64,000 nt of DNA, taken from assembly GCA_964252035.1 (NCBI GenBank), contig OZ176200.1, one strand, 5' to 3'. Below are positions 3,256 through 48,977 of this stretch, piece by piece; the stretch's first letter is position 1; every line of letters begins with the position of its first letter. The translations under genes were made by a program, and so were the position numbers. Below the pieces are notes generated by a model. It had not been told where the DNA came from and searched no databases. It saw only the letters and a list, made by a program, of their open reading frames with translations. The stretch comes from Podarcis erhardii (taxonomy: Eukaryota).

Positions 3256-4124
3256 ACTGGCTCTCACTGGCTCTCACACTGGCACATTGGCACCAGCCTG
3301 TCTAGGAAGACCTTCTGCCTGGCAACTGCCAGCAACTGGAGAATACTTCCATTACAGACTGAATGAGTTCCACCTGCTCAGCCCCACTCTTTTAGCTCAA
3401 GGGCTCTTGATGGGAGCTGCTGCCTGCAATGACACCAGGGATGAATGAAGATGAGAACCTGAATAATCCTGGTTCTTTATGGACACCATGTAATTTTTGT
3501 TCCTATACTAGACTAGAAAATCTTTTGCAAGTCACTTTGAGAGCCTATAAAGCAGGACTGAAGGAATAGAAAAAAAAGTTCCAACGAGTGCACTGACCAA
3601 AGAGCTCGAGAGGTTGCCATTTGGTTTGGAACAAACCAAATTAACCATACAAAAGATGTTCAGGTAATCTGAAGGCAAAGTCTTTGCATTAAAGCATCCA
3701 AACTGAATTTTCTGAAGTTCACATTTCTTAAGTCCATAAGGAAACTAATTGGCTGTGCCTTATTCCATAGTCATTTAATTGTCCTCTTCGACCTTCTATT
3801 ACAACCTCCGATTACTTAGAACTCTTTCTAGGTCTAAACCCTGTGGGACAATGAGAAAATTAATTTACTAATGTCCACAACACTGTTTGCCAGGAATGTA
3901 TCCCCAAGCATCCTCTTTTGCAAATAGTCTCTCCTTGAATATATATGTAGCACGGCAAAGATTTGGTATATAATTTGTTGAAAGACTGCCTCTTCATTTC
4001 TAACACAAGTGAGTGAGTTTAATGTTCAGGGTTTACAGAGAATGGTGCACAAAGAGGTTATTCCCTATCACAACACTAGAACTTAGGCTTGTCAAGCAAA
4101 ACTGATTCTCCTGAACCTACATGT

Positions 4125-5090: not shown

Positions 5091-5298
5091 CCTTAGGTAG
5101 TGGCAAACAATAGACTGGGCTTTAAGAACTTCCTGGACTGGGTGGAGAAGCCTAAGACAAGCCTAAGAGAAAAGAGCCAGTTAGATAACACAGCCTGGCC
5201 TCTTCAGATCTAGCTATCACAAGACCTCTGAGTCCTAGGAAAACTAGAGTCTAGGAAAAGGTGGGAAATTTGATTCCATTTGCATTTAAGTGTGAACC

Positions 5299-5470
5299 TG
5301 TCAAGGCTCGGCCAAGGCTTCGGAAAGCTATTCCTTCCCCGGTTGCAGCAAGAGCAGAGAAAACAAGGAGAGTCCTTTTTAATGAGTTTTATTCAATCCT
5401 AATAGTGAGAGACCAAAGAACGCAACAAGCCTTAACATGGCGTTGCTCCAAACTGGACTCCTCCCTCCCT
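5299..5470 (-). mobile_element. Truncated LTR (R/U5-like end)
   Basis: Minus strand has AATAAA ~90 nt before a terminal ...CTTGACA, similar in layout to the LTR end at 32851-32924; boundaries uncertain. Confidence 0.35.
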
Positions 5471-8400
5471 CCTTCTTTTTATACATATATTATAATTTTT
5501 CATTATTTTTTCATTAATAACAATCCAGTATAGACCACATTAATACAATACCAAACCATAATTCAATTAAAAAAGCCAGTTGTCAGGGGCCAGTAAGATG
5601 TGTGGGGTATAAATAGCAAAATTATCATTATGGAATGGGACATCCCTATTTTCATCAGAGAAAATCCCCAGTCCTATCTGGGGATGCCAGGTGTTGAACC
5701 TTCTGGACCTTCTGCACCAAAAAATGTTGTTGTTGTTGTTTTATATAAAAAATATATAACACCCTTCACCCGAGGATCACGGGTCACTTGACAGTATAGC
5801 TGTACCGCTAAACTATGGCCCTACCCTTGTGTAGTCCCTGGCACACATACAACAGGAAGAGCCAATGTGGTGTCCTCCAGGCGTCACTAGACTACAACTC
5901 CCATTGGCCATGGTGGCTGGAGCTGATGGGAGCTGCAGTCTTGCATACAGCCTGCCCCATCCTAGTTCCAGTTTGCAGTGGGGATAGATTACACTCTCCC
6001 AGCTTATTAAAATTTAGTCCATCAACCTGTGTTTATCTTACAACATTTTCTGTAGAGTACTGCAACCCCCCCCCCATTATTCTTTTAATACTTGAATATA
6101 ATTCTGTTTTACAGAGGAATGAATTAAATGCCAGGTTTCTCCAGTAAGTCAGAGGTCCTGTGTTACGATATTTTTCTCACTCAAAGTATTTGTACAGGTC
6201 TTTTGCATTTTAAGAGATTCCACCCACCCCGACTTGGAAATTATGGAATATTCTTATATGACCTTTTGAAGGTAGTTTTTTTTAACCATCCCTGGAGGGA
6301 AAGGACATTGGCCAGTGTGCTTCATTTGTAATGTTATCAGTGCTCAATGATTTGAACAGCTGTCAAATGTACCCCACAGGTGTGTGGAATACCTGCTAAA
6401 AGGAGCTGTTTTGCACTCATCTAGCAGTTACTTAAATGTGTTTCTCACTGCATTAAGTGGGTTAATTCTTAAAACATTGATTCAAACCCTTAAGGGTAGA
6501 CTCTGATGTGAATTATAGATAAGTGTGAATCTTACTAGGGGAAAACCTGCCTGTATCGGAAAAAGGAAAGCAGAGTTTGTGAAATTATGCTACTCCTGAA
6601 TTTAAAATGCTTATTCTTGCCAGCACTTGACATTGATTGATTTGCCATTCATTCAAACTTCCAGCAACCCACCAAACTGGATTTAATTTTTGGGAAGATT
6701 AGACTATTAGACAAGAGACACTACCATTAAACAAGGGAGGCTAGAGGAGCTGTACCTAACCTTGAGTCCCCAGATGCTAGACTTCTATTATCTCCAGCCA
6801 ACATAGCCAGTGGTCATGAATGATGAGATATTCAACAACCTTTGGGGACATGAGTTTAAGGAAATGTAGCCTCAGAGGTCTGGTATTTGCTACACCTTTC
6901 CCAGCCTGGATTGCCCCTCTCTTCTCCCCTCAAAGCCATGAATAACTACATGAGAAATATGGGGAGCAGGCCAGCTCAGGCAGCCGTGACATAGAATAGA
7001 AGCAAGCTGAGGCCTAATTTGTTTGGAAGTGATAGATTTGGGTGAATTAATTTTGAATCTTTTAACCCATTTCAAAGTATTAATTTTGAACAGTCAAACT
7101 GCTACTGCATACATGTTTCATTTGGTTGGATAAGTGGTCTATTGGGGGAGGGGGGTTAGGATGGAACATTTTTTTTCAGATGATGCCATCTGCCTGGTGT
7201 AACTGATGGACCTTCTTTGCTCTGGAAAGCCAAAGAGGTGATAACAAGGCTTTCAAAATTGTTTCTGGGAGATTGGCATAGAATAAGCTATGGTGGGCTC
7301 GTTCTTTTGTTCATATATGTCAGTGTTTGTAAAAAGCAAAAAAAGAAAAAAAAAGAAAAAGGAAAGGGTTCTGACCTCCCTTTGTCTCCTCAGCCTGGTC
7401 CTCGGACCCTTGTGGGCATAAAAGAGTCCACGAGAAAAGTATCCTTGCAGAGTTTTATTCTTTGTGCAAAAGTCTTTGTGCAAAAGCGACTGACACACAA
7501 CAACACTACCAGCTTTCACTAACCAACCAACCAACCAACCCAACACAGCACAGCCAACCCAACATTTCTCACTCTATATATACAACCTAGTGCAGGCCGC
7601 TGACTCATGCTGACCCAGCTTTATTCGCATTAAAGAAACAGCGGCCATTTATTCGCTCTTTCATTTGTTTGTTCCTTCTTTCCTGATGTGGTTTCTAATT
7701 CACACTAGTTGTCAAAATAGCAATACTCCTTTACAAGATTATTTACATTTCTAATTAGCAGTTAAAGGTTGCATCCCAACTGCTATAGATCTTTTGGTGT
7801 GGTTGACAAATGAAACTGACATTGTCAGTAGAAAACACCACTAAATTCACTGGTGATTACCTCCAGGTAACTCTGCGTAAAAGCTATCAACTCTCACTGA
7901 GGGTGCAGCTATAGGGCTGTCACAACGAGCACCCACACTTCAAAATCTACCACTACACCTCTGTGCATATGCAAAGCAGATTGAGAAGCTCCAGCCTCTA
8001 TCATCCCTTTTCAACTAAATTTGCCCTCAAGTCAATTTATATCCAAAATGATGGCATCTGATTTATCTAATTAATATAGCATATCCATGGCCAGATGAGA
8101 AACCATTGATGACCTTAGAGTGAAATACACTGGCAGAGCTAGGAAAACTGTCTTCAGGAGCCACCTTAATAAATCTTGCAAAAAGAAAAATCTGGAGATT
8201 GTATATGTTTAGCCCATACCAAAGAGAGAGAGGGAAAGAGGCCTATAAATGCTCCCCCTATATAGGCTGGCTTTATTATATATCTCAAAAGCAATTTCAA
8301 AAGCTTCTGAATTATGCTCCTTTTCAGCTTCTAGGAGAACTTAGAGCAATAAAAGGAGAAAAGTAGCCTCCGAAGTTCATTTTCATATAGATTTATAGGA

Positions 8401-11400
8401 AAACTGCTTTGATGTCTTCTGCATTCCCTTGCCAGTTAAAGGAGGAACTTCTATTAAATTTAACACCACCTCCCTCACTCCTTTTCTCTCTGCTTCTCCC
8501 GCTCGTTTTCGGCTCCCCCCCCCCTTTGTGCTTCAAACCTCATTTATCTTTTATGAGTACTGGGCATCGTGCCATAATAATGCTGTGAATAATACAAGAC
8601 TCCTGTAACCATTCAGAGTTTTTACTTTTCTTCCCCCAATCAACACATCGCATTATTGACTTTCTCATTCAAGGAGGTGCCATGAATGGTCCAGTGCTTA
8701 TAAGCACTGCAGTGTGCTATTCAACACAGTGAATAGACAATGTGATAGTGATAGCCAAACTTTGGGGGATGCATTATGTGCTATGAATGCACAAGGCAAA
8801 TCCTCCCACTCCCAATGATACCAACACAGGCATTTAAAGGTGCTGCAAACCCTCTGCTTCTGTCAACTGCAATGGAAGCCCACTGCAAGGTTCTGAACTC
8901 CTGAAATTAGGTCACCAAGAGACACACATTTTGTTGTTACTCTCGAGAAGTTCAATGGGATTTGCATTTCTAGGGCTCCAGGAAAGAGGAGTAAGGAGAA
9001 GTGCTAATACATTCAGTCTGTCTGGTACTGTGGTCCATATCTACTCCCTTTTAAACAAAAGGAAACATGTGGCATTGCTTTCACTGAATGTGCTGCCAAT
9101 TCTTCTCTATTATTATGAGTGTTGATGTGCCCGTGTGTTGCACAGATCTGATATTTCTGTGCATGCTTTTGTGCATTTTTATCTGCACATGGATGTTTCA
9201 GGTTAACTCTGTCTTAATGTTTCCCATCCACATTAGCAGGTGGTGCTTGATGGGGTGTATTTGCACAGTACATTGTGCCTCTCCCTCAGTTACTACTTCT
9301 CTACTCTGCAGAAAACCTGTGATCCATTGTGGGCATGTGCCCAGATGTTTGTTTACCTGCATGGAAGCATCTTTTTTTTAAAAAAAAAAAAAAATGTCAG
9401 TGGAACTGCATAATAACAAACAAATAGCAAAGCCAAAAGTTCAAGCATGTTTCACAGTGGGCAAGTTGGCCATTTTTAAAACAACCAACCAAACATACAT
9501 GCTTTTTGGTTTGTCAGAAATAGGCTGACAACAGGAAAGCTAAAACCATATGAATATATTTTTTGACACATTTGTGTTTCTCATATGCCGAACTTAACCT
9601 GTGAAAAGAGGATAACAGTGGTGATGGTGATTATGATAATAAATCGTCACAGTGATAAGTTGTTGATGATGCATTGCAAGGTTTTAGGGTAAACAAAGGT
9701 CTTGACAGTTTTTTGCATGGAAGACTAATAGTACAATCCTAAACCACCCTTACTAAGAGGTAAGCCACATTGTGCTAAGTGATACTTACTTCTGAGTAAA
9801 CATGCTTAGGTTCGTACTGTCCATCATGGACTTTGGATATTCAGAGGCTGGTCTCCTTTCCCACATGAACCTGGGAGTTAGAGCTTCCATCTAGGGAAGG
9901 AGGTGAAGATACATAATTTCTCTCTTTTTCTCTTTAGGAAGGCAAGGGCTGATTTACTGCTCAGTTTTCAACACCATGCAGAAAACTCTTGCTGAATGAT
10001 CACCTTGTTACTATTTCTACTGAGTCAGCCCATATACTAGGTTAACTCACATTAACATTAATGGGAGTAGCGAGGCTTCAGCTGAGGGCCTCCCACAGAA
10101 AATGTATGTCACAGCCCTGAAGCATTTGCTTTGATTCTTATTTACAGCTCATACCTGTTATTTGGTGCATGCTTGTAGGGGAAATAGATGTCCTATATTT
10201 TATCCCTGGGATTTTCAACATTCCTGTTTGTTTGTTTTTAAAAATGGGCACTTGGAAACAGAAATAATTAATGTCCAGTTTCCCAGAGATCAACACAATC
10301 CTATGCATCTCCACTTAAAAGCAGATCTCACTATTTCCAGTGGAGCACGTGCTCACAGATAAGACTTTTTAAATATTCTTTATTATTTCACTCACTTTCA
10401 TACTGCTTCATTGTTGCATGTTGGATATATAGAAAGCAATGCAGGGCTCAGACTGGGCCACAAGGCAGCTTGCCTAATGAGCAGGTTGCAGATACATCAT
10501 TGCTTGTGGTTTCCACATGGGCAGCTGACAGAAGGAGGTACAATAAGGCTGCTGTCTGCTACATGGAGGTTAGGGTGGGGGCTGTCACCCTGGGTGCAGT
10601 TTTTTGGGGGGGCGCAGGTTGTCATGAGCCGCTGTGTCCTTCTCAGCTGCCCTCCACCTGAGAAGGATACAGCAACCCAGGTGATCCAAGAGCCCAGCTC
10701 TGCTCACAAAAGCAATGCAGGGCTCAGCTTGCAGGGCACCTGAGCTGCTGCCTCCCCCAGCCACCTCCAGCAGCTGAGAAGAACACAACAGGTGCATGCC
10801 AGCCCTGCAAGAGGGGCTGGGCTTGCAGGGGGCATGAGCTACCACCTACCCTGCCTGAATGTCCTGTGTTATTTACCTTGGGCTGTTGCTTGGCTCAGCC
10901 TCTGGATCACGTTTTGGACCTAGCTGAATCCCCTGTGCTTGGTCTTTGCTCATTGAGGCTATGCTGTACATCAAACCACACTCTCTTGGTTCATTTTTAC
11001 CTCCCAAGACTGAGACCTCAGCCTCTGAGAACAGCCCACTGGAGCAAGGCAGCCATATAGTGAAAGAAAAAGAAGTAAAACAGGAAAGAGGAAGAGAAGA
11101 CAAAATTGCATCCCCAGTCATGGCCAGACAGCTGACCCTAGAATTGTCTCAGCTGTCTGGGTTGGGGCTGGGGGAGGCAGTAACAGTAGTTAGGTTGGGG
11201 CTGTGGCACTGCTGGAAGCACAGTCCTGCAGATTCTCTGCCTCAGTCACAGCCCTGGAAGGCTAAGTTGGCAGGGGGGGGCACCAGACGCCTGCCAGACC
11301 TACACTGTCATGCAAAGAACACACTGTGCTCCTAATGGGCAAAATGGCCATGGGCTAAATGCAAATCCCTGTCTGTATGCTCTGCAAGGCTTCGACAGTA

Positions 11401-11971
11401 AAGATCTGGACCTGCATTACTGTATACTTGTGTGCTAGTGTGTAGTGTCAGATCAGATTAGGCGTTGGTGCCATGGTGGCACATCCCATGGACTGTGAGT
11501 CTGTTCAAGCCACATGCCTTGTGTCAGCATTAACACAATAGGGAGTTGGACTAGATGACCCTCAGAGTCACTTTCAACTCTACAATTACATGATTCTATG
11601 ATTTCCCATGTCTGAATGTAGCCTTAGTTGACAAGTCATGGTAAACCATGGCTTGCCATGCATGAGCCAATCACCTTCACTTCACTCCTCCCTGCTCTCC
11701 CACAGTTCCTGGCTTAGCATTACCAGGGGTCATAGTTCATTTCACTCCATACAAACCCAAACGATACTCCAAGGTTTGTTTTTGACGTACCCATTGTGGT
11801 TTGTTTCAGTGAAACAAACCACAATCCCTGGTCCAGATTTGTTTCCTCTGCATGCTGGCTGTATTAAGCAAAACAGCCCAGGTGAAACTGTAAACTGTGT
11901 TTCAGCGTGAGACATGAACAGGGCCAGGGTGACAAAGTGATGCAAGCTCTAGTTACAAGAATGACACAGTA

Positions 11972-12197
11972 CAGTGGTACCTCGGGTTAAGAACTTAATT
12001 CATTCTGGAGGTCCATTCTTAACCTGAAACTGTTCTTAACCTGAGGTACCACTTTAGGTAATGGAGCCTTGCGCTGGCACCACACCACTACAGTGCGATT
12101 TCTGTTTTCATCCTGAAGCAAAGTTCTTAACCCGAGGTACTATTTCTGGGTTAGGGGAGTCTGTTACCTGAAGTGTCTGTAACCCGAGGTACCACTG
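11972..12197. mobile_element. Tc1/mariner (Tigger-like) MITE
   Basis: Same TIRs as 787-1025 with TA TSD at 11970-71 and 12198-99. Confidence 0.9.
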
Positions 12198-18119: not shown

Positions 18120-20048
18120 TACATCAAAATTGTTTTGATTTTTTGTTTTGTTTTATCAGTGCATGTCAAGCATGTCAGCAGAACACCATACTACAATAAT
18201 GTTGATGGGGGTAATCAAGAAGCAGTTGACTTTATAAAAACTTGGTACCTCTTTGCTACCTGCTTGATGGACAATAGTGTGACACCCTCTGCACACTCAC
18301 GTAAAACTCTGGAATAACAACATCTTTCACTGGGGTATACTGTATTATGGTAACTTGTTACTGTACATTCTTATCTGTGTAAGTTTGACAACTATGAAAG
18401 ACAATTGATGCAACCACATGTCTAATCACAGCAATGGTGTTTTGGGCAGTATTTCACTGATATGCATGTCTGCTTCTGTAAAGTGTGTGTGGGAACTGAA
18501 AACTGTTGTGCATGCAGTGTGCTGTCCAATTTTTTGAGTGGGTGGGAATCGGAACAGGGATTATTCAAAATGCTTCACTTTCACTTTGAAGACAAGACCA
18601 GGCAATACAGAATTCCCAAACCCTGGCAAGTGTTGTGAGACGTATGGCATTGGTTACAGGGAGACAACCTTCTCAGTGCTTAGCACCCCAGCTGTGAAAT
18701 GCCCTCCCCAGAGAAGCCCAACCTGGCACCTTATTTCTGCTCCTTCCGGCACCAGGGGCAGATTTTGTTTTATTTCCCCAGACTTTCTTTAGAACATCTG
18801 TGAACATTTTGCCACACTAGTTTTTACGGACCACGTATGTCCAGTCATTGTATGAAACTAGTTTTATTTATTTTTCTCGCTCTACTAATTTTTATGTTGC
18901 AGTTTGTTACTTTCATGCTTTTATAATCTAACCTTGCATCTTATGCTATTGGGCAGCCTGGAAGAAAGAAGACTGCAAACATCCAGATGCAAAGAATATC
19001 AAAAGTGTCCCTTCGGCTAACTTATCTAGTTCTGATGACTTCTAAAGTATGAACACTTTTCTTTATCTCTGTGGTAGCTTGGGTGGAATTCAACTAAGTT
19101 TTACTCAGAGTAAACCCACAGAAATGAGTGATTAAGGCCCATTAATTCCAATGAGTAACCCTTAGCTGAATACCACTACATTTTCTTCCCTTTTCTGCTT
19201 TCCTTCTTAATATGGTATTTAAAGGCTTGCACTGAAGGAGAGAGAAAAAATGTTAGAGGAGGATAAAATCTTTAAATCTGGGAAGCAGTGGTGGAATCTT
19301 TACCCCTCCAGTAATAAGTTCATAGCAGTTCTCTAATTATAACAATAGTGGTGCTCACATATCCTACGGCAGTTGGGGGGGAAAATAGTTTGACTGGTAT
19401 TCCATCATCCCCCCTCCAACTGCTAAATCTTTAATAGCATTTGTAATCTCTCCTGTCATCAAATAAGCTTCCAATAATAATTTATCTTTAGTTCTCCTCA
19501 TAGGGCTCTGCCTTGAGTAGGTAGTAAGAAATGTGCAGCACACAGCTAAATACCCGAGCAGAGCTAGCTCAAGAGATGTATCCTCTCTAGGCTTAATTAT
19601 ATCAAAATTAATACACCAATGCATTAAAATTAAATGAAAATTAATTTTTTATTCTAGATACGTGTGGTATAAATTAAACAAGAAATTGATGACAGAAACT
19701 CATTCTTTGTTTGAAACAGTTTCAGCAGTATTAATATGCCTTACCTTACTTCTTGAATGCTAATTCAGAACTCCTCCTGAGCAGTGTTAGATTTTTCTGA
19801 ACTCGTGAGAAGCCAAGACTCAGTATTTAGATTGGAAGCTTACAATCTAAATGCAGAGTTTCAGCCCCTTGTGAGTGAGCATAAGAACATCCTGATGGAT
19901 CATGGTCCATCTAGTCCAACATCCTGTTCTTACAGCAGCCAACCAGATGCCTGTCAGAAGTCCAGAAGCAGGAACAGAGCACCCAAGCATTCTCTCCTCC
20001 TGCAGCTCCCAGCAACTGGTATTCAGAAGCGTTACGGCCTCCAGCAAT

Positions 20049-20293
20049 GGCCAGTGTGGTGTAGTGGTTAAGAGTGGTGGACTCATAATCTGGTGAACTG
20101 GGTTCGTGTCTCTGCTCCTCCACATGCAGCTGCTGGGTGACCTTGGGCTAATCACACTTCTCTCTGAAGTCTCTCAGCCCCACTCACCTCACAGGGTGTT
20201 TGCTGTGGGGGAGGAAGGGAAAGGAGAATGTTAGCTGCTTTGAGACTCCTTAGGGTAGTGATAAAGCAGATTATCAAATCCAAACTCTTCTTC
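20049..20293 (+). mobile_element. tRNA-derived SINE (Squam3-like)
   Basis: A/B boxes, same body and CTT tail as 2982-3255. Confidence 0.85.
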
Positions 20294-20423
20294 CAACAAT
20301 AGAGGCAGAGCATAGCCATCATGTCTAGGAGCCGTTGCTTAGCCTTCTCCCATCACTAACTGCTGGGGGAGAAAATGCCATAATTTAGCAATGGGCTATG
20401 TAAATAAGTACTTTCTTTTTCTA

Positions 20424-20549
20424 CAGGGTAGCTCAGCCAGTAGAGCACGAGCCCCTTAATCTCAGGGTCGTGAGTTTCAGCCCCACATTGGGCAAAAATA
20501 TTCCTGCATCTCAGGGGGATGCACAAGACATCTATATGATTCCATGATC
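20424..20549 (+). mobile_element. tRNA-Lys(CTT)-derived SINE (Squam2-like)
   Basis: Head TAGCTCAG..GTAGAGCA..CTTAATCTCAGGGTCGTGAG..AGCCCCACATTGGGCA resembles tRNA-Lys and is followed by a CR1-like ATTCCTGCAT...ATGATTCCATGAT tail. Confidence 0.75.
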
Positions 20550-37686: not shown

Positions 37687-40600
37687 ATATCTTGTGATTG
37701 ATTATGCAGGGCAGGGCTTACCTGCCCTCCACAATATTTTATTCAAGTTGGCATTCCTGCTGGCAGGGGTGGTTTGCAGTCCTACCTAGGTTCACCAAGA
37801 ATTAAACCTGAAATACAGCCCATCCCTAATAATTTTGCAAGTATGATTCAGTCTACATACTTCAGATGTCCATTTCCTCTTCCTGTTAGTGCCCAAATCC
37901 TTTCTGTAATTTAGCCTAGTACCCCCTTGCAGTGCCCCCCCCCCCACAGGTGGATGTGTAAAACCATCTCCCTGTTTTGGTTAAACTGAACACACTGATG
38001 CATATGAGTGTCTTGTGTGCTTGTTGTGTCTTCTGTGTCTAGAATATTATTACTTACATTTGGAAACCTTTCTTCTCTCCAAAGAGCTAAAGCAGGACTA
38101 CAACAGACCTGCAAAGTAAGATAAGGCCAAAAATTAGCAAAAAACAAACAAACGTTAAGCATGCAGAATGTTTCATAACAAGTTCTCCACCGAAAGACTC
38201 AAGAGTCTTACTGCTAATTTTCTTACTGCCATTTACATTTATACACATGCACACACAAATTTAGAGAACTTGATATAAGCTTATATAACACAGTGCCCAA
38301 GTTTTCAATTCCTTGCAAATTTCCTGTGCTTCCCCCACCTGCTCCCCCTTAACTTGCCTTTACAGAAGGTGGGCTGTAATAATCATTTTGGCTGTGTCTT
38401 GAGGGTTCAGCATGAGCTCATGGGTCACCAATTTCATTTATCTAACTCATCACAAAGTGCAGTGACAGCAAAGTCACCCACTGTGCCTCCTTCTACCAGA
38501 GCAAATAACATGGAAAAGCTACATTGGTGTTTTGTTTGGGGAAAGTAGTGCCAAAGTTATGAGCCGAGAGAGACTAGTTTGGCTTATTTGGCTGCTCACT
38601 GCCTTCTTGTAGTCAGGTTTTGTTTTGTTTTTTGGTTGTAGTTTTTTAAGGACAATTGCAAAGTTTAGTTGATCAAAATTATCCTTTGGGATTGTTTAGT
38701 CCCAGGTTATGGAACAAATTATTTTCCTGACAGAGTGATGCTGATAGTTGGGATATAGTACAGAGTAGCATCATGTTATCAGGGTGATCATATTGTATAC
38801 TTCATTCAAGTGAGAGAATTGTCCTGTACTGTGAAGACAAACTAAATTGACCAAAGTAATCTATAATGCAAGGGATCTCTGGGAAAACATTTTTTAAAAA
38901 AAAAACGTTTGTCAAAATGTCTCTTTTAGTTAGGCTGTATATATACATACCTGCACATTTAAAGCACATTCTACAACAATACTGGGCACTGGAGTTTGTT
39001 AGGGTTTGCTGCTGGGAACTCTAACTCTGTGAGTTACTATAGTGCCCAGAATTCTTTGGGGAAAAGAATGTCCTTTAAAGGTATACACAGCCAGAGACTG
39101 CTGGTGCCTAAATAATATTTCCATGTGGTCTTTAAAGAGAAAAGTGAAACTTTTTGAGACTTTGGAAATGGATTGCCTCTAGATGAGTGTGTAACCGAAA
39201 ATACAAACCTTATCTACTAATTCATTTGGATACAACTGAAAATGAGGGTGGGTCATGCTTATAGGCCCCACCTCCAACCTCTATGTTGCTTATGTCAATT
39301 GTGTATACTATTTGCATAGATCCTAAGAGTGTACACGTCTGTCTAAAAGATTTGATACCCTGACAAATAGAGGGTATACGATGGCTCATACAGGATAGGA
39401 GTACACATATGTTCTGATGTTATGTTCATAGGATCCATGTGAATGCTAGATGTAGAGAATTTCTTGTCCGCTTTTCAATTAAAGCTAATTCCTAAAGGCC
39501 AGTGGCAGAGCCGTCTCAATGCATTTCTTTTGTAACCAAGTGAAAATAGAGCAACTAACATATACCCCTCATGCAGAGATTGGCCTTGTAAACATCATTA
39601 GTAAGACTTCTACCTGCTTCTGAATCATTGTTAAGGAGAGAGTTCAGAGTGAAGACACCTTCATTGACATGCTGGATAAATTAAAAAGCTTTTAGCAGAA
39701 GGCGCAGGCAAATTAATTGTATAATTGCCATGCAATGGGGTGGAGAGTTGGGATCACCACATAGCAGAAAGAAATTAACTACTGCAAATTAATTAGAATG
39801 TGGAATAATGAAAAAATGCATAACAATGCTCTAAGTGGCAAAACAAAACAAAGAACTGTTATGGAAAACGTATATTGCGTAATTGTAAACAACAAAATAA
39901 TAATAATTGTCATGGTCCCTTCACAATTCCACAATGTTCCTGGATCAATGCTTTCCAAAATATGTCAACCTCTCTTTCAACAGTAAGGCACTTCTCCCAC
40001 ACGATGGCATTCATGCTGAATCTAGCTTCAGCCCTTACATCAGTTTTTAAATAGTCCAGTGGAAGCACTAGCAATAGTGAAAAACTAGGCAGGGCCAGTT
40101 CAAGACATTTTGGCACCTGAGGCAGCCCACAAAATGGTGCCTCCTTCCCAGGAAGAAGTGGCAAATGAAGATTGACAGCAAGAACAAAGGGAAATAAAGA
40201 TCTGCATTGGGATTCGCTGCCCCTGTGGACTGGGGATCGTTCGAAAAAGAGACTAATTTAATCTTCCCTATTGTTTTGTAAGCAATTGGTATGAAAACAG
40301 CATACACAAATAAGATGCCCCTGGGAAAGAAACTTGCCAAATTTCAGAAAGACAGATGTGGAACTTTGGGTGCTTGGCACCTTTCCTGTAGTCTATAGAA
40401 CCGCATGTTGTGTACCTTCTCAAGGAAAAGATAAAGCGCAGCTGCAATTCTCTCCTCTGCTTTTAGAAGCAAAACTTCAGTTACTTTGTCCAGGCAACCT
40501 TGAGCAACTCCAGTCACTCAGGAAGTCAATAATTGACTACAACTAATGCACTTGTGTAATGAATGGTTAAAGAGACACATTTGGCTTTAATGGACCTTTT

Positions 40601-41679
40601 ACTTCTGCAGCGAAAGATTTCAAGACTGGAGATTTACCTCTGGCATCTGGTACAGCACCTGTCTCTAATGGAAAGCTACAACTCTCTCTTAAAAAGTGTT
40701 TCTTCCTCTCATGGATGCCCTTGTAGAGCTATTGGATTCACCTGTGCCTATTAAGAAGTTTGTTCCCTCAAATCTCATTAAGTATCCACTTGTGTGTCAA
40801 ACTTCCTTATGCACACCTGCCTTTCATGAAGGATAACCTTATGCTGAAAAGGAAGGTGATTTTTGTGTGTGTATGAAGTAACCTTCTGGCTGTTGAAGGT
40901 AGGTTTGTGTTCTTTAGAGGACATCAGAAAAACATACAGCCTGGCTGTAATATTTTCCCCTCACATATACTGGGTTTGTAAATTAATTATTACCAGGGCT
41001 CTCAACTATTTAAAGATTTTTTTTAGTTGATTAATCACCTGCCTTTTAACCAATTAATGATCTGATTGCATTTAAACATATTTGCATATTGCCAACACCT
41101 CAGTATAGGTGCCCTTTTGAGCTATGGAAAGAAGGGTATGGTTTGCTAAATAAACATTTCCACTCACTGGAAGCAAACTCCATCTTATAGAATCAAAGAA
41201 TTGATTGGTAAAAACCTGCAATGAAGGGTCCACTGTTAAACAGATCTTACCATCAGAAAGTTTTTCCTGGTGTTTAGTTGGAATCTTCTGTCTTCAGTAT
41301 GTTGCTTTCTTATTATCTAGTTTCAATTATTCAATAAATAACAAGAGTGTTTTTAATTAAGCACAATCAGAAGGCTGGATGTCTAGATATAATCCTTGGC
41401 TTCTCAGCTGTGTGGAAATCAATTTGAATTTTTCTTAAGTAGATCAGACAAGTGGCAAGAATAACTCGGAGAGCTAAAATAGGTATTGCACTTGCCTCAT
41501 GCCACCCAAAAAAGCCTCTCTGTGGCATGTGAACCATATCCCATATGTAAGATGGGTTCAGCTTTAAATGGGAGTTGAATCTAATTTCTCCCCCATTCTT
41601 AAGCAGATCTGGATCTTTTTGCATCTTGGACTGCACAATGGGGCTAAAAATCCTAATTTCACATATGCTCTAACAGGGG

Positions 41680-41895
41680 TCTGAGCTGGTCCTGACTGAC
41701 CAGGAAAGAGATCTTGAAGTTGTGGTGGGTATCTCAGTTAAAATGTTGACCTAGTGTGCAGCAGCTGTGAAAAAAAGGCAAATAAAATTCCAAGCTAAAG
41801 ATCCTGAAGAAAATAATACTGCCAATGTCATCATGTCATTATGCAAAACCATGGTTACCTCACTTCAAAAAGGATATTGTAGAGCTGAGAGAGGT
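41680..41895 (+). mobile_element. CR1 LINE fragment (upstream part of the element split by the Copia insertion)
   Basis: gtgtgcagcagctgtgaaaaaaaggcaaat...cctcacttcaaaaaggatattgtagagctg matches CR1 RT sequence that resumes at ~44243. Confidence 0.7.
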
Positions 41896-43508
41896 GAAGT
41901 AACTGTGTAACTTATCCCTCTTTTGTGAAAGAACTGCTGCAAAGCAGAACCAGTGTACCTAGCATTTCTGTCACTGACGATTGCTTTCACCTTGGTGGAG
42001 AACCTTAGTTCCACCCCCTCAATCCAGCTCCTGATCAGCTGTGCTGCATCCTCCCTGGATTTGAGACCGTGGGTCCAGGTGTTCTGCGAAAAATCATCCT
42101 GAAACCTTAGCAGATACCTGGCCCCCCCTAGACTCTGTTCCCTGACAGGATTGAACAGATCTATGTGTACCAGCTGAAAAGGTTTAGTGGTTACCCGTTC
42201 CACCTTTGGGTAACTGCACCCTTGCACCTTTGCTTGTCTGCAAGTGGCGCAACTAATGGCACGTCCACAATCTCTAATTTTACACCCTCTGGTAACCTCA
42301 GGAAGCACTTGCAGTTCTTCTAGAGAACCATGAAAAGTCCTCTGATGCCATGCACAAGCACATTGAACATGAGTGGGAACTGTAGCACGCTGCGCCTGCG
42401 CTCTCTCAACCTTCCCCTCACCCCCAAGAGACATTTTAAGAATGAAAAGATCATTCTGCCCCTTCTTAACCTTGGCAAGTACTCTCTCCCCTTTGGAGAT
42501 TGTGCAGACATCATCCTGGAAACAAACCTGAAACCCTTTTTTCAACAAATAAGGCACAGATAACAAACAGTGATGCACCTCTGGGACAATACAAAAATCC
42601 ATCTGTTCCTGCAAAACAGAAAGATAAACATTAGCAAACTTAACAGTCTGTCCCTGTCCTTTTGGAACTGCCGTGCAATTCCACATCTCGACTGCAGGGG
42701 TCTCTGGAACCATGTTGCGGTTAGCTGCAGAGTCAATAACAAGATTCAGCTCCACACGGCTGTCTTCAAACAAAGCCATGCTAGCAGTTACTTGATAAGA
42801 CTCTTCCTGTTGTTTACCACGACGTCCACCTGCACGTCCGCCGGACACAATCCCACGCCTGCCTGCCTTTGCAGGCTTGTTGCCATGGAAACCCGCCTGA
42901 TTCCCATGAGAAGTGTCCTTCACAACATCCTGCCTCGGCTCTGTGCTCCGGTGGGGGCAACTGCCACGCAGACGTTGAACTCCAGTGGAAAAACACTGCC
43001 CAGGGCTCCTCCCAGCTGGCCTGGCCTTCCTTCTCCTGGAACGGCGCCTCCCACCAGCCTCGCCCCTTCTGAAGCTGCTCTCCGCTTCAGTACTTCCTGT
43101 GGAAAGTTTCTTAAACTTGCCTTTGGAACTCTTCGCCCCCCCGATCTGCTCACCAGCGCTCCTAGAGGCCGATACATCGGGAAATGGGCCTGCCAGTCCA
43201 GCGTCTCCAGGGCTCTGGCCTTCTGCTGAAGCTTCACACAAGCCCTTCAGCAACTCCCAGGCAGCCCTTGCTGACTGTACACCCTCCAAATGAGGCTTCA
43301 GCGATGCATGAATGCATGCTCTGAGCATATTCAGCTCTTGTTGCAATTTCTGCTGACTATCGTCCCAGCTAAGGGGTGGTGCTTTTGGTTCCCTCTGGCT
43401 TGCTTCCCAAAGCCCATGGACCAGGAACCAGCCCCTTATTCTTCTGCTCCAGGTTGCCCAACTTTTTAAAGTGAGCTTTTCCACCGGAATATCCTGGCTC
43501 TCTGCCAT
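41865..43508 (-). CDS. Ty1/Copia-derived 547-aa protein: partial Gag, degenerate protease, HHCC, truncated integrase core
   Basis: ATG at 43508 in AAAATGG context (the ORF track starts at an upstream TTG). Motifs: KL..W..WSRR...L..GLW and AWELLK (Copia Gag N-terminus); VIDSAANRNM and VPE...LLSV..L...G..V.F (Copia PR); WHQRTFH...CATC (HHCC); LVHIDL, GGARY, DDFS, SDR (rve core). Domain order PR-IN is diagnostic of Copia. Confidence 0.75.
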   Translation of the reverse strand: MAESQDIPVEKLTLKSWATWSRRIRGWFLVHGLWEASQREPKAPPLSWDDSQQKLQQELNMLRACIHASLKPHLEGVQSARAAWELLKGLCEASAEGQSPGDAGLAGPFPDVSASRSAGEQIGGAKSSKGKFKKLSTGSTEAESSFRRGEAGGRRRSRRRKARPAGRSPGQCFSTGVQRLRGSCPHRSTEPRQDVVKDTSHGNQAGFHGNKPAKAGRRGIVSGGRAGGRRGKQQEESYQVTASMALFEDSRVELNLVIDSAANRNMVPETPAVEMWNCTAVPKGQGQTVKFANVYLSVLQEQMDFCIVPEVHHCLLSVPYLLKKGFQVCFQDDVCTISKGERVLAKVKKGQNDLFILKMSLGGEGKVERAQAQRATVPTHVQCACAWHQRTFHGSLEELQVLPEVTRGCKIRDCGRAISCATCRQAKVQGCSYPKVERVTTKPFQLVHIDLFNPVREQSLGGARYLLRFQDDFSQNTWTHGLKSREDAAQLIRSWIEGVELRFSTKVKAIVSDRNARYTGSALQQFFHKRGISYTVTSPLSALQYPF

Positions 43509-43812
43509 TTTCTCCCGTTCTCCCAAGGTGCCCCACAAGCTGTACTTACTCAGTACCAGCTGATTCCGGCTCCTGTACGTGGAGAAACGGCCCAGCTGCT
43601 CCGGCTCACCCTTCCGTGGAGGAACGATTTCAGCTGCTCCCAGCGTTTAGCTCTGTCTCTCAGCAGCTCTCTTGCCTCTCAGAAGCAGGCAAAAATGCCC
43701 TCTGCTTCCCGGCATCAGGCTAGACTCACGGAATGCAGCTTCCAACCTCCGGCTAGCTTCAAAGCATTCCAGTAGCTCAAAGCCGACTGCTTTTACGAGC
43801 GTTGACTGACCT

Positions 43813-43820
43813 CCATAACC
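43813..43820 (-). promoter_or_regulatory. Decayed copia-type primer-binding site
   Basis: Minus strand ...TCTCAACA|GGTTATGGAGGTCAG; first 8 nt equal the copia PBS GGTTATGGGCCCAG and directly abut the LTR end. Confidence 0.75.
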
Positions 43821-44242
43821 TGTTGAGATAACGATCTTTGGAGCTTGATCGTTGAGCCGTGGCCACTGATTAGTTTACGATCTCAATCAGCCTTTGCAGC
43901 GTCCAGCACACTTCCTTCCGTGCTGCGCAATAAATTCTGCTGTCTCTTTAGTCACGGCTTCGCAGAGTAGCATACAGCGGTGTAAAGCAGTCTTTTTCTC
44001 CTTTTCCCCAAGCAAGCATACACAGACAGGTTTGTCTATTTACAGCTCTTTATTGGAACATTTCAGCCCATCTAAGACCGGGGCTTCTTTCAGCCATGGT
44101 AAAACATGTCCGTCTCTCTCAAGACACACAGAGAGAACAAAAAGTACAGTCTCCTCCCAGACTCCTCCCAGCTTCTACAGCTGACGTCAGAAAGTGACGC
44201 ACACCTCAGAACACTTAACCAGTTAAGTTCTGAACTCTCACA
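43821..44242 (-). mobile_element. 5' LTR of the Copia-derived element (422 bp)
   Basis: Minus-strand termini TGTGAGA...TCTCAACA, PBS directly downstream, AATAAA at 44054-44049, CRE palindrome at 44182-44189; CR1 sequence resumes immediately outside. Confidence 0.75.
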
Positions 44243-44800
44243 GAAGAGGGCAATCAAAATGATCCAAGTGGATGGAACAATGCCCAATGATGAAAGGCTG
44301 CAGCATTTGGGGCGAGTTAGTTTAGAAAGAGAGATTGGTAGGGCTACTGTACATGGCAGAAGTGTATAAAATTATGTAGGGTGTGAAGAAAAGGGTTAGA
44401 AAGACCTTTCCCTCTCTCGCTCCTAATACTAGAATCTAGGGTTATCCAACAATGCTGAGAAATTAAAGATTCAGGATGCTCTTCAAGCAACACACAGTTA
44501 AACCATGGAATTTGTTCTCACATGATGTAGGGATGGCCCCAAACTTGGATGGCTTTAAAGAAGGTTAGACAAATTTGTGGTGGACAAGGCTTTCAATGGT
44601 TACTAGCCATGATGGCTTTGTACTATAGTATGGGAAGCAGTATGCCTCCCGATAGCAGTTGGTGGGAATCCCAAGTGGGGAGAGGGCTGTTGCAATTGGG
44701 TCCCACTTATGGGCATCCCAGAGGCATCCAGCTGGCTAGTGTGGGAACAGGGTGCTGGACTAGATTATCTTTGACCTGATCCAGCAGAGCTGCTCTTACA
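44243..44800 (+). mobile_element. CR1 LINE 3' end
   Basis: gaagagggcaatcaaaatgat...ttggatggctttaaagaaggttagacaaattt...tactagccatgatggc...ctggactagat...ctgatccagcag, a diverged CR1 3' region. Confidence 0.8.
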
Positions 44801-46094
44801 TTTATATTCCAATAACTTGGTGTGTTTGTTGCTGGAGTAGTGGGGCTTGATATGTATGTCTGCCTGAAGTTGCTTTGGTTTCTTATGGCTTTATTTCTCT
44901 ATCTTCCTAAAGCAACTTGTGTTCCATGGCATCATCATGTTATTTTGAAACAACACGGGAAGAAGCAAGGTAAGTCTCTTTGTTAGATGCTTTGACATTC
45001 AGCAGCATGTTATGAAAAGTATTAATCAGTTCTTGAGATAAATCCAATGAAAACAATGAAATATTTAGTGCATATGACACTCAACAAATTAATGCTGAGG
45101 GAAATCAGCTTGACTCTCATTGACTCCTCCTTTGCTGCAGATGAATTTATGAAGCCTCATTCACAATGTTAATATCCAAGAGGCCCCAAGGCTAGGTTGC
45201 AACCAAAAACACATAGCTTGTTTCTAGACCTAGTGTAGCATTTCTTATCTTCTGGACTTCATAAAAAAGTAACACACACACACAGGTATGGTAAGCTGAT
45301 AAATTTGTAAATAAAAGCAAAGAATCTCACAAGTGCTACAATTGGGTCTCTAGTGCAGGGATGAGGGAGGGGTGGAACAGAGAGCATTTTGAAGAATAAA
45401 AAGCCCTGCATTGAGCCCATGGGATTGAGAGAGATATAAATAAAGTTCTAATAATAAATACACCTCACCCTGGGACTGAAAATATTCAAGGAAGAGTGGG
45501 CTATAAATACTGTGAATAAATAATAGTTGTGGTTGGCACCACTCATGAGAGGCATATTATACAATGACCACAATTCATTATTGCATTATTAAGTATTTTT
45601 AAGTCCACTGAAATCAATGGGCTTCAGTGAGTTTAATTTATGTTGGAATAAGGCCAAAGTGCATTCATTTGGAAGGGCACCACTTAGCTGTTCCCTGGCC
45701 CTGTGCTGCTTATCTCATGTGGTTATTTCTCAAGAGCGTCTTATCTCTGGCTTCATGTGGTTTAAAAATTACTTCAGCTAGCTGATCAATTCTTTGCATG
45801 TTTATTTATGTGTATAGGACTGCAGCTTAATACGCCAATAATAAGCAGGATTTTGTTTTTGTTTTGCCTTGTCTGCTTTGCAGTTTAAACTTGACTATAT
45901 ATACAAGAACAGGCCTTTGGACTTTGCTGTGAATCTTGGCTCCTATCCCCCTGAAATTTCTTGCTGTCGTCGTTGAAACCTGAAGTAGCACTCCTCAGTA
46001 TGTGTTGCTAAATCCAAAATATTTTTTTCATACCTTTAGTTTTTAATCGTTTTTCCAACCAGCAGTTCAAGACCATTTAAATACAGTGACCATA

Positions 46095-46402
46095 TCTTTT
46101 TAAATATTTTTTTTATTAGTTTTCACACATATTTTCCAGCATAACATCCTTTTAAACATTGTTTCAAAATTTTTGGCTATCACAGCCTGAGACTTCCTTC
46201 AACCTCGACTGGTGGTTTTCTAAAGTATTTCTAATTATGCATTCTGTTACTATAGTTATTGCTATAAACTCAAATTTCCAATACATCTATTCTTAATTCT
46301 CTTCACAATAATTTATAATTTACTCCTTACAAAACTTCTTTTAACCCTACAAGTGATGTCAATTGATTACAATTGCTTTCCAGATATGTCAAAAACTTTT
46401 TC
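46095..46402 (-). mobile_element. Older L1-clade LINE (copy A), 3' part
   Basis: ORF2 end KFLTYLESNCNQLTSLVGLKEVL* plus T-rich tail; continues at 48972-49085 (QEKLMNYAEMARQTGKIRNQQDQTFIKGWK). Confidence 0.65.
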
Positions 46403-48977
46403 TTTTTTTTTTTTATAATAATTTTTATTGATTTTACAACATAAAGAAAAAACAAAACAAACATAATGCGACTTCCCCAAACCTCCCCTTCACTGCATCC
46501 AAATTTCAAAATTTTTAGCAATTCTTCATCCCATTTTTATATTTAATTCTCTTTAAGAAGAGTTTCTGCTTTATAAATTTCGATTTATAGCTGTAATTCT
46601 TAGTGTCCAATCCCCTGACATCTTAACATTCCGAAATTTTACAACAATTTTTAAGATAGATTTTAAATTTTTTCCAGTCCTCCTCCACTGTCTCTTTCTT
46701 CTGGTCACGGATTCTGCCGGTCATCTCTGCCAGTCCCATAAATTCAGTCACCTTGGTCTGCCATTCTTCCAGAGTAGGTAATTCTTTAGTCTTCCAATAC
46801 TTCGCCAAAAGGATTCTTGCTGCTGTTGTTGCGTACATAAAAAAGGTCCTATCTTTCTTTGGTACCAATTGGCCGACCATGCCCAAGAGAAAAGCCTCCG
46901 GTTTCTTTACAAATGTCCACTTAAGGATTTTCTTAATTTCATTATAGATCATTTCCCAGTAGGCCTTAATCTTTGGGCAGGTCCACCAAAGGTGATAAAA
47001 AGTTCCTTCACATTCATTACACTTCCAGCAATTGTTATTGGGCAAATGATATATCTTTGCAAGCTTGACTGGGGTCATGTACCACCTATAGATCATTTTC
47101 ATTATGTTCTCTTTCAGGGCACTACATGCCGTAAATTTAATACCTGTGGTCCATAGCTGCTCCCAGTCAGCAAACATAATATCATGACCAATATCTTGTG
47201 CCCACTTAATCATGGCTGATTTAACCGTTTCATCTTGTGTGTTCCATTTTAGCAGCAGATTATACATTCTAGACAAATTCTTAGTATTGGGTTCTAGCAA
47301 TTCTGTTTCTAACTTTGACCTCTCCTTCTGAAATCCTAGTTTTCTGTCCTGCTTAAAAGTTTCATTAATCTGGTAATAATGTAACCAATCTCGGACTTTA
47401 GGTTTCAATTTCTCAAAACTCTGTAGTTTCAACTTTTCACCATCATATTCTATAATTTCACAGTATTTTGGCCAGTCTGTATCCATGTTCAATCTTTTTA
47501 CCGCCTTAGCTTCCATTGGTGACAGCCACCTGGGGGTTTTACTTTCAAACAAATCTTTATATCGATTCCATACATTATACAATGCTTTCCTAATAATATG
47601 ATTTTTAAAATTTCTGTGTACCTTTACCTTGTCATACCATAAATATGCATGCCAACCAAAACTATTATCATAACCTTCCAAGTCCAGAATATCTGTATTC
47701 TCAAGAAGTAGCCATGGTTTCAGCCAGCAAAAAGCTGCTGCTTCATAGTAAAGTTTTAAGTCCGGCAGGGCAAAGCCCCCTCTATCCTTTGCATCAGTCA
47801 AAATCTTAAATTTAATTCTGGGTTTTTTGCCCTGCCAGACAAATTTAGATATATCTTTCTGCCACTTCTTGAAACAGTCCATCTTATCTAAAATTTGCAA
47901 TGTCTGGAACAAAAACAACAATCTCGGCAATACATTCATCTTAATTACAGCAATTCGGCCTAACAAGGAAAGTCTCAATCTTGACCATATATCGAAATCT
48001 TTCTTCACTTCAGCCCAGCATTTCTCATAATTATCTTTAAATAGATTCACATTCTTAGATGTTAAGTTCACCCCCAGATATTTTACCTTTTTAGTAATTT
48101 CCAAACCCGTTTCTCTTTGAAAACTATCTTTTTCCCCCACCGTGAGATTTTTTTCCAACACCTTTGTCTTGTGTTTATTCAATTTAAAACCTGCTACCTG
48201 ACCAAATATTTCAATAAGTTCCAAAACTCTTTTTGTGCTAGTTTCTGGCTGTTGTAGTGTCAAAACTAGGTCATCTGCAAATGCTCTTAGCTTATAATGT
48301 TTAGTTCCGACCTGTATACCTTTAACCAGCTGGTCTCTTCTAATCATGTTAAGGAAAACCTCCAGTACCGATATAAACAATAGAGGGGAAATTGGGCATC
48401 CCTGTCGTGTCCCTTTCTCTATTGGAATTTCATCCATAACCATACCATTTACAATAAGTTTGGCCTTTTGCTCAGAATAAATTGCACTTATACCATTTTC
48501 AAAGTTCTTGCCTACCCCCATTCCTTGGAGATTCCTCTTCATAAAACTCCAACAAATATTGTCAAAGGCTTTCTCTGCATCCACAAAAATCAAAACAGCT
48601 TTTCTATTTATGTCAGTTTCCAAAAGTTCTAGAATATCTATAATATTCCTCACATTGTCTGACAAATGCCTGCCTGGTAGAAAGCCTGTTTGGTCCCTGT
48701 GAATCTCCTCTAACAGCACTTTTTTGAATCTTTTTGCTAGAATGTCTGCAAAAATTTTATAATCCACGTTCAAAAGTGATATAGGGCGGTAATTCTTGAC
48801 TTGATGTTTCTCAGTTTCTGTCTTTGGTATAAGTGAGATGAATGCTTCCTTCCACGATTCGGGAGCCTTTTTCCCCTCCAAAACTTGGTTGCAGACTTCT
48901 TTCAATGGTTGTATTAACCAATCCTTCAATACTTTATAATATCTCGCAGTTAATCCATCTGGCCCTGGTGATTTTCC
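46403..48977 (-). mobile_element. Young L1-clade LINE (copy B), 5'-truncated, nested in copy A
   Basis: Poly(T) at 46403-46414, 3' UTR, then an uninterrupted ORF2 fragment. Confidence 0.9.
46623..48977 (-). pseudogene. L1 ORF2 fragment (reverse transcriptase plus C-terminal Cys/His domain), endonuclease missing
   Basis: GKSPGPDG, NYRPISLLNVDYKIF, DAEKAFD, GTRQGCPISPLLF, AFADD, KYLGV, CWKC...GTFYHLWWTC; open for 785 codons. Confidence 0.9.

Follow-up and report, generated by a model that had tools for sequence, protein, structure and literature searches.

Features of the locus

The window, that is, the whole 64-kb stretch of DNA that was analysed, contains on its minus strand an inserted Copia-type fragment, flanked on either side by parts of one older interspersed host repeat (Table 1). 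Besides its sequence, the probable 5′ LTR is supported by read depth: in X1, the probable source run, summed depth climbs from ~43,000 to 120,000–183,000 at ~43829, as expected if copies of the LTR are more numerous than those of the internal parts. The LTR-terminal CA at 43821 is followed by GGTTATGG..., within a motif that presumably resembles the internal initiator-tRNA-Met binding site of Drosophila copia; an Rfam scan of 41300–44700 returned one chance-level match and no tRNA-like match. A leader of ~310 nt separates the LTR from the coding frame. An LTR upstream of the frame had been proposed in an earlier note on this DNA and is indeed present on the 5′ side, but it probably spans just ~420 bp, the remainder of the interval being leader.

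A self-BLAST and a repeat search found neither a second LTR nor any other copy of the family in the 64-kb window, and there was no direct repeat within 38000–48000. The inserted copy also lacks RVT_2 and RNase H, in agreement with the earlier description of an element devoid of RT/RNase H and 3′ LTR; being cut at 41897, it represents a fragment of a Copia member and not a complete element.

Table 1. Features of the inserted fragment and its flanks, in the order in which the minus strand is read.
Feature	Position	Strand	Residues	Remarks
Older interspersed host repeat, part upstream of the insertion	44241..44783	.		X1 summed depth ~10,000–12,000
Inserted Copia-type fragment	41897..44240	-		2,344 bp; 5′ LTR, leader, gag, protease, N-terminal two thirds of integrase
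Probable 5′ LTR	43821..44240	-		~420 bp, TG..CA; single LTR, boundary placed by sequence reading and depth rise
TGACGTCA palindrome in LTR	44182-44189			
AATAAA in LTR	44049-44054			
Primer-binding-site-like motif GGTTATGGAGGTCAG	43806..43820	-		Directly after the LTR-terminal CA
Open frame	41865..43508	-	1-547	547 codons + stop; first ATG at 43508
Element-derived part of the frame			1-537	Codon 538 spans the junction; ~539-547 and stop are host repeat
Gag N-terminal helical piece	43215..43508	-	1-98	Aligned with Copia Gag N-termini
Basic, low-complexity linker	42768..43214	-	99-247	In place of the C-terminal part of Gag
Knuckle remnant CFSTGVQRLRGSC	42957-42995	-		Within the linker
Retropepsin-like protease barrel	42429..42761	-	250-360	DSA for DSG; 9-residue flap deletion
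Integrase N-terminal HHCC zinc-binding domain	42219..42371	-	380-430	Motif intact
Integrase catalytic core	41898..42191	-	440-537	Cut before the catalytic Glu
3′ junction, 3-4 nt microhomology (CACC)	41893..41896	-		Fits both the element continuation and the host repeat
Same host repeat, part downstream of the insertion	41537..41896	.		Supplies the last codons and stop of the frame

The open frame and its coding domains

The frame runs through its 547 codons with neither stop nor frameshift, as the earlier note had read it, and extends to 557 aa when started from a TTG (41865..43538, minus strand). A Pfam search of the ORF identified rve alone (residues 451–549, E 6e-10), and Retrotran_gag_2 was not detected; the nearest Copia polyproteins additionally match Retrotran_gag_2, zf-CCHC, Pol_BBD, gag_pre-integrs, SH3_retrovirus and RVT_2. 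Protease, HHCC finger and rve core succeed one another in a single frame, which is the Copia gene order.

Individual motifs were compared column by column with 43 relatives in alignments A1 and A2. In the N-terminal piece of Gag, residues W20, W34, H73, A80, W84 and L87 are invariant in A1, and the AlphaFold model is confident over residues 10–98, with a pLDDT of ~95. The central portion of Gag is absent with respect to the relatives, as seen from gaps in A1, and the linker is predicted to be disordered over residues 99–166 and 190–247 (pLDDT below 50); both results confirm the previous description of a Gag reduced to its N-terminal ~100 aa and followed by a basic, low-complexity stretch. The zinc knuckle (CCHC) is degraded, as had been noted, with a T in place of the second Cys, which is conserved in 31 of the 43 relatives, and an R in place of the His, conserved in 32 of them.

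The protease barrel was modelled with a pLDDT of 84–97, except for residues 270–290 (~60). Its three reported alterations are all confirmed by the alignment: the Gly of DSG (G in 35/38 relatives) is A in the window, the His of DSGAxxH (H in 30/43) is N, and the flap is shortened by a 9-residue gap. DSA is also found in two otherwise complete Copia polyproteins of 1,291 and 1,294 aa (P0057 and P0084), and does not by itself prove that the protease is dead. The HHCC finger is intact, as previously read, its residues H388, H393, C420 and C423 being nearly invariant in A2, and AlphaFold is confident for integrase residues 380–540. The retention of two catalytic Asp (D450 and D513 in A1/A2) and the loss of the Glu were both correctly noted, but the lesion is the cut at 41897 and is specific to one copy.

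Junctions and the empty orthologous site

The frame terminates ~10 codons inside the older host repeat, so that its last 9–10 codons and its stop are host repeat sequence and, contrary to the earlier account, the ORF is not wholly element-encoded. In single-copy contigs from two relatives, organisms B and D, position 41896 is joined directly to 44241. X4 record 18 (2,057 nt, depth 19.6, equal to that of the single-copy flanks) aligns through its letters 260–1905 to 44241–45900 and through 1906–2057 to 41754–41896, whereas X10 record 13 (1,423 nt, depth 23.3) aligns through 1–157 to 41754–41896 and through 158–1423 to 44241–45520. In both records the pieces abut with more than 31 letters on either side, and joints were accepted with at least 31 letters per side. 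Since these contigs join 41896 to 44241 with nothing between, the segment 41897–44240 is a lineage-specific insertion. Over the flanks, the contigs of organisms B, C and D are ~1–2% diverged from the window, and the presence of the ORF at the orthologous locus of close relatives, which had been sought as a test of domestication, is contradicted by the empty site in organisms B and D.

In place of the two LTRs and 5-bp target-site duplication of a canonical insertion, we found one LTR and no duplication at either junction. The X1 contig covering the 5′ junction has 24 letters in the element, which is below the 31-letter rule. Around the microhomology at the 3′ junction, the match between the window and a contig of organism B (X4 record 19) extends down to 41893, beyond which the contig continues in the integrase frame; in the contigs with the empty site, the host repeat starts again at 41896. 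The continuing contig carries a GVAE motif, indicating that the missing catalytic Glu is specific to the window copy. Additionally, paralogous host-repeat copies have loose ends that run straight across the insertion point (in X10, at 41887). One X1 contig of depth 56 links 41895 to 44247 via 7 letters, which occur at single-copy depth in organism C, and the X1 junction contig has a depth of 69.5, versus ~90–112 on the flanks. These contigs would agree with the sequenced animal having one empty allele, but a paralogous host-repeat copy could also account for them.

The apparently exact 5′ end of the LTR, the lack of a target-site duplication and the 3–4 nt of microhomology at the 3′ junction suggest that a non-canonical process brought the copy in or reshaped it, most likely the end-joining capture of an incomplete cDNA or a one-ended integration repaired by microhomology. 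The same sequence, microhomology included, would also result if a complete element had inserted with a 5-bp target duplication and had later lost, in a microhomology-mediated deletion, all that lies between mid-integrase and the far end of the 3′ LTR, together with one of the two duplicated target copies. LTR elements commonly suffer internal deletions; however, this sequence of events appears improbable, because the right breakpoint must have hit the end of the duplicated target exactly and the host repeat is neither shortened nor duplicated, its continuity being confirmed by the paralogous copies, so that a one-step event is more parsimonious. A processed, LINE-mediated retrocopy was also considered and rejected: on one side the fragment begins with the U3 end of the LTR, and on its 3′ side it is truncated and carries no poly(A).

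Abundance of the family

Logan contigs at least 85% alike were collected and their k-mer depth summed, giving a measure of depth and not a copy number. In X1, summed depth over 41919–44210 was 43,000–183,000 versus 90–112 on the flanks, roughly 400–1,800 times the single-copy value, and a single site was covered by up to 19 distinct contigs. In X4 and X6, the coding part reached roughly 50–600 times their own flank depth. The depth pile-up occupies exactly the span 41897–44240, indicating that the insertion belongs to a high-copy family. A single or low copy number without transposon termini, as would suit a host gene, is thus incompatible with a depth hundreds of times that of the flanks and with the LTR that is still present.

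Relatives, lineage traits and selection

A phmmer search returned 15,645 matches, of which the best long ones are Copia polyproteins, including members from Podarcis lilfordi, with E-values of 1e-54 to 1e-40 against proteins that carry Retrotran_gag_2, rve, SH3_retrovirus and RVT_2. Together with the gag-PR-IN order, this similarity supports the assignment of the element to Ty1/Copia. Among 1.84 billion representatives, the identity of relatives did not exceed 53%, or 35% for those bearing an RT, and a homologue search with the whole ORF, using a length band that leaves out full polyproteins, gave one distant match of 28% identity. The collections searched held neither an exact entry for the 547-aa protein nor a close annotated protein, and our literature searches found no paper on lacertid Copia elements.

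A decayed relative, L002, shows 62–64% nucleotide identity to the window in codons aligned under tblastn guidance, and 69–74% by blastn. Its knuckle remnant, CFSTGV, is that of the window and its protease reads D-T-A, and this sharing indicates that the lost knuckle and the D-[ST]-A protease are old lineage traits and not products of local decay; in other copies of the family, these traits are presumed from L002 and from the lack of high-depth differences at those codons in 40 of 223 rows. Two further candidates, L001 from P. lilfordi and L003 from a Logan contig, were rejected as family copies: each is from another, canonical Copia family with 33–51% amino-acid identity, the former with DSG and the latter with a complete integrase. 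The fallback offered by the earlier note, that the altered motifs characterize a Copia subfamily, which may be a non-autonomous one, agrees with the data.

The simulated probability of the frame still being open was 0.66, 0.38, 0.28 and 0.07 at 0.2, 0.5, 0.65 and 1.3% divergence, respectively, and we attribute the open frame to the youth of a copy that has had too little time to decay. The earlier argument, that an open frame combined with altered motifs implies selection at the locus, does not hold, as the motifs were inherited already altered, being present in L002, and the frame would survive with a probability of ~0.3–0.7 at 0.2–0.65% divergence. Between the window and L002, dN/dS was 0.28 for the protease-integrase part and 0.49 for the linker, from a protein-guided alignment with dS near saturation. 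When the nucleotides were aligned in a frame-blind manner, the fraction of identical letters was 0.84, 0.83 and 0.745 at codon positions 1, 2 and 3, respectively (p = 0.076). This signal of constraint lies between transposon subfamilies, not between orthologs.

That distinction bears on the headline claim of the earlier note, a co-opted, Copia-derived lizard gene expressed from its own LTR. The 547-codon frame, its native-looking Gag start, the upstream LTR and some signal of purifying selection in protease and integrase would suit such a gene, but the empty site in two relatives that are ~1–2% diverged and a depth hundreds of times that of the flanks refute it; moreover, the flanking repeat supplies the C-terminus and stop, the signal of constraint is one between transposon subfamilies, and the protein has no exact or close annotated counterpart in the collections searched. 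We regard domestication as extremely unlikely.

The same data bear on the nature of the source family, which might be a non-autonomous (satellite) Copia lineage whose remodelled Gag-protease-integrase ORF still serves its propagation, with RT and other functions borrowed from autonomous Copia elements of the same genome. This proposal, which we consider somewhat less likely than not, refines at the family level, and does not replace, the interpretation of the window copy given below. The lost knuckle and the D-[ST]-A protease are common to sequences with ~30–36% nucleotide divergence, suggesting that the lineage persisted and amplified with both; the dN/dS values, the identities by codon position and the lack of relatives above 53% identity, or above 35% with an RT, point the same way. 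However, the frame-blind test is weak and the linker nearly neutral, besides the saturation of dS and the protein-guided alignment already mentioned, and L002 is itself decayed. DSA also occurs in complete polyproteins, the contig from organism B retains the GVAE of integrase, as an autonomous element would, and close full-length proteins may be missing because short-read contigs fragment high-copy repeats. The fuller version, a satellite lineage of lacertids that lost the knuckle and much of Gag, altered its protease, maintained its ORF by purifying selection while diverging by more than 30% at the nucleotide level, and underwent a sharp expansion in one species versus its ~1–2% diverged sisters, is somewhat more doubtful still.

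Interpretation

The locus very probably harbours a recent, lineage-specific, 3′-truncated copy of a high-copy family of Ty1/Copia-type LTR retrotransposons in a lacertid lizard, inserted in an older interspersed repeat. Its 547-codon frame would be open through youth, with a stop that happens to lie ~10 codons inside the host repeat. The shortened Gag, the lost zinc knuckle and the D-[ST]-A protease would be inherited traits of its Copia lineage, as opposed to local decay or host-gene remodelling, whereas the absence of the integrase Glu, RT, RNase H and 3′ LTR would reflect the truncation of the window copy alone. This copy is unable to transpose alone, and a host function is not expected of it.

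The outcome is negative as regards a Copia-derived host gene at this locus, and illustrates how, where elements are active in a genome, an extended open frame bearing unusual motifs may be no more than what a divergent transposon lineage has recently copied there. Copia is usually a minor component in this vertebrate group; this lineage seems to be present in great abundance, to have been active recently and to be unevenly spread among closely related lizards, and the junctions of the window copy suggest a non-canonical route of insertion. If the source family were indeed a satellite lineage, the remodelled protein would serve the parasitic element and not the host.

Comparison with known systems

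The autonomous Ty1/Copia elements of lacertids in the P0002/P0158 cluster, which includes members from P. lilfordi and encodes polyproteins of 1,385–1,386 aa, have the same order of gag, protease and integrase, and share with the window the Gag N-terminus, the LLSV protease motif, the HHCC finger and the two integrase Asp. The identity is nevertheless 29–32%, and the window lacks the central Gag, the CCHC knuckle, the Gly of DSG and part of the flap; unlike these elements, the window copy has nothing downstream of mid-integrase. More generally, Copia persists in reptiles and is absent from birds and mammals (PMC4350176).

The domesticated genes PEG10, RTL1, PNMA, ARC and GIN1 likewise have a long open frame of gag, protease or integrase ancestry. 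They are, however, single-copy, syntenic across species and devoid of transposon ends, whereas the window copy is absent from the orthologous site of relatives, retains an LTR and belongs to a high-copy family.

BARE2 is a non-autonomous Copia derivative of plants. Both BARE2 and Tos17 belong to the Copia lineage and, although their coding capacity is incomplete or altered, still amplify, presumably helped in trans; Tos17 is reported to have no gag and to be mobile nonetheless (PMC3977881). These plant elements lack other parts than the lizard family, which is represented here by one truncated copy and one decayed relative.

In yeast, the cDNA of the retrotransposon Ty1 has been described as being captured at chromosome breaks through end joining. 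The window copy resembles such events in being a truncated fragment without target-site duplication, with a short microhomology at one junction and an end that apparently coincides with the LTR terminus; it differs in that, for the lizard, the mechanism is a proposal drawn from the anatomy of the junctions.

Insertion Absent from Close Relatives

The 547-codon Gag-protease-integrase frame belongs to a Copia-type block that the earlier note had read as a domesticated lizard gene or the product of a non-autonomous Copia subfamily. Logan contigs of four sequencing runs (X1, X4, X6 and X10, from organisms A, B, C and D) were mapped onto 40200-45900. Flank contigs of X1 show 0-1 differing positions per kb from the window, so that X1 probably comes from the source animal or its species, and those of B, C and D differ by about 1-2 %. 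In a single-copy contig of organism B (2,057 nt, depth 19.6), 41754-41896 and 44241-45900 abut (record positions 1905/1906), and a contig of organism D (1,423 nt, depth 23.3) has the same 41896-44241 join (record positions 157/158), both extending far above 31 letters on each side. The block was therefore inserted after the split from the lineages of B, C and D.

Features in and around the inserted block
Feature	Coordinates	Strand	Remarks
Open reading frame	43538 (TTG) to 41865	minus	first ATG 43508
Inserted block	41897-44240		2,344 bp
Probable 5′ LTR	44240-43821	minus	about 420 bp; TG...CA
tRNA-Met-like stretch	43897-43925	minus	within LTR; starts GCGCAGC, on through GGAAG and GTGCTGG
LINE ORF2 fragment	46623-48929	minus	768-aa open frame; RVT_1 reverse transcriptase domain, E 2e-37
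Abundant short repeat	41155-41345		loose contig ends at 41229 and 41286
tmRNA call	20030-20479		permuted; ARAGORN

Summed depth over the element far exceeds that of its flanks, which rules out a single-copy gene; the element is a member of a high-copy family. This multiplicity, together with the empty orthologous site, refutes the domesticated-gene reading.

Depth of contigs at least 85 % alike, summed over the element; an order of magnitude only, not a copy number
Run (organism)	Flank depth	Element depth	Remarks
X1 (A)	90-112	43,000-183,000	measured over 41919-44210; a single site has up to 19 distinct contigs
X4 (B)	about 18-20	about 1,000-11,700	coding part about 50-600x flank
X6 (C)	about 68-78	0 to about 43,000	no such contig on 43638-44019 (LTR 3′ part and leader start)
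X10 (D)	about 23-24	0 to about 630	at most about 25x flank; no such contig on 43638-44210

The LTR of the element's subfamily, compared over 43638-44210, reaches about 1,200-1,800 times the flank depth in A and some 120-190 times in B; C and D have no contig at least 85 % alike over much of it. Such uneven depth, despite a single-copy flank difference of only about 1-2 % among the four organisms, may point to a burst specific to one species or to rapid turnover of the LTR.

Open Frame Explained by Youth

From the ATG, the 547 codons are indeed free of stops and frameshifts, although the stop is not native: the junction falls within codon 538, and the host repeat supplies the stop about 10 codons further on. 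In a neutral simulation on this frame, with substitutions and with indels one tenth as frequent, the probability of remaining open was 0.66, 0.38, 0.28 and 0.07 at divergences of 0.2, 0.5, 0.65 and 1.3 %, and about 0 at 3 % or more. Since the insertion is younger than a species split of 1-2 %, the intact frame is unremarkable, and youth suffices where selection had been thought necessary. The element is a young, truncated copy from a Copia lineage that is both divergent and abundant; it is an ordinary kind of element, whose modest residual interest is at the family level.

Copia Affiliation and Altered Motifs

Pfam recognized a single domain in the frame, rve (the integrase core; residues 451-549, E 6e-10). 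A phmmer search run exhaustively against 1.84 billion representatives gave 15,645 matches, the top long ones being Ty1/Copia polyproteins of 32-35 % identity with Retrotran_gag_2, zf-CCHC, Pol_BBD, gag_pre-integrs, rve, SH3_retrovirus and RVT_2 domains. One matched cluster holds proteins annotated in Podarcis lilfordi and full polyproteins of 1,385 aa; as close relatives, public protein sets offer short fragments only. A stretch of P. lilfordi OX395126.1 (L001) carries, at its positions 6428-8309 and adjoining a serpin gene, a copy of a different, canonical Copia family with a DSG protease. An internal stop and a change of frame interrupt this copy, and the assembly annotates it as two separate hypothetical genes (405 and 102 aa).

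Motif states, read from two alignments with 43 relatives, bear out the earlier description. The Gag N-terminus is alignable and the central Gag region absent; the zinc knuckle is degraded to C..T..R..C (second Cys in 31 relatives, His in 32); the protease reads DSA (DSG in 35 of 38 relatives), has Asn for the His of DSGAxxH and lacks nine flap residues; and the HHCC finger and both integrase Asp are intact. DSA would not by itself prove a dead protease, because two otherwise complete Copia polyproteins (1,291 and 1,294 aa) also have it. An AlphaFold model built on the second alignment predicts with confidence Gag 10-98, a protease barrel at 250-360 and integrase at 380-540, and predicts disorder in the basic linker (residues 99-166 and 190-247).

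The odd knuckle and protease motifs appear to be lineage traits that predate a deep split within the lineage, because a decayed, diverged relative, a 1.66-kb Logan contig with its own deletions and frame changes (L002), shares the CFSTGV knuckle remnant and has a D-T-A protease. Its identity to the element is 69-74 % by blastn and 62-64 % over tblastn-guided codons. Some constraint on the protein is suggested by Nei-Gojobori dN/dS between the two (protease-integrase 0.28, linker 0.49), in an alignment guided by protein similarity and with dS near saturation; by this measure the linker appears close to neutral. A frame-blind nucleotide alignment points the same way, with identities of 0.84, 0.83 and 0.745 at codon positions 1, 2 and 3, but is a weak test (p = 0.076).

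The integrase does end before its catalytic Glu in the window's copy, but this is not a lineage trait: an organism B contig that is 86 % alike (record 19, depth about 1,170) follows the window as far as 41893 and from there stays in frame through ...GVAE..., the region of that Glu. The absence of the Glu, RT, RNase H and 3′ LTR thus appears to be a truncation private to this copy.

Insertion Route and Allele State

Both flanks belong to one older interspersed repeat (summed depth about 10,000 in X1), and loose ends from paralogous copies read directly across the insertion point, showing that the host gained no duplicated base and lost one at most. Neither junction has a target-site duplication; the 5′ end apparently coincides with the LTR terminus (TG), and 3-4 nt at the 3′ junction (CACC, 41893-41896) are compatible with the host as well as with the continuation of the element. 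Most simply, this would be a one-step non-canonical event, in which an incomplete cDNA may have been captured by end joining, or one end integrated and the other repaired by microhomology. The same sequence would result if a normal insertion were later shortened by a deletion that stopped exactly at the duplicated target, but this needs a coincidence.

A further X1 contig (depth 56) joins 41895 to 44247 via seven letters, and the X1 contig reaching 24 letters into the LTR has a depth of 69.5, against about 90-112 on the neighboring flanks. Both would fit a heterozygous insertion in X1. Organism C has the same seven letters in sequence of single-copy depth, and they agree with the consensus of the host repeat; the depth-56 contig is possibly a paralogous copy of that repeat.

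Neighboring Features

About 2.4 kb from the Copia fragment lies a still-open LINE ORF2 fragment. The very abundant short repeat at 41155-41345, possibly a SINE, is common to all four organisms (summed depth about 130,000 in X1, about 22,000-115,000 in X4, X6 and X10), with many loose contig ends. The tmRNA call is almost certainly a false positive in a lizard genome.

Probable LTR and Candidate Primer-Binding Site

An LTR of about 420 bp fits the rise of X1 depth near 43829, from 43,000 to 120,000-183,000. Within it, about 80 nt upstream of the primer-binding-site-like motif, is a stretch that by eye may be similar, in the sense direction, to the 5′ half of vertebrate initiator tRNA-Met; an Rfam scan gave no tRNA match. 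That motif, GGTTATGG..., directly follows the LTR, and we take it to be like the internal initiator-tRNA-Met primer site of Drosophila copia.
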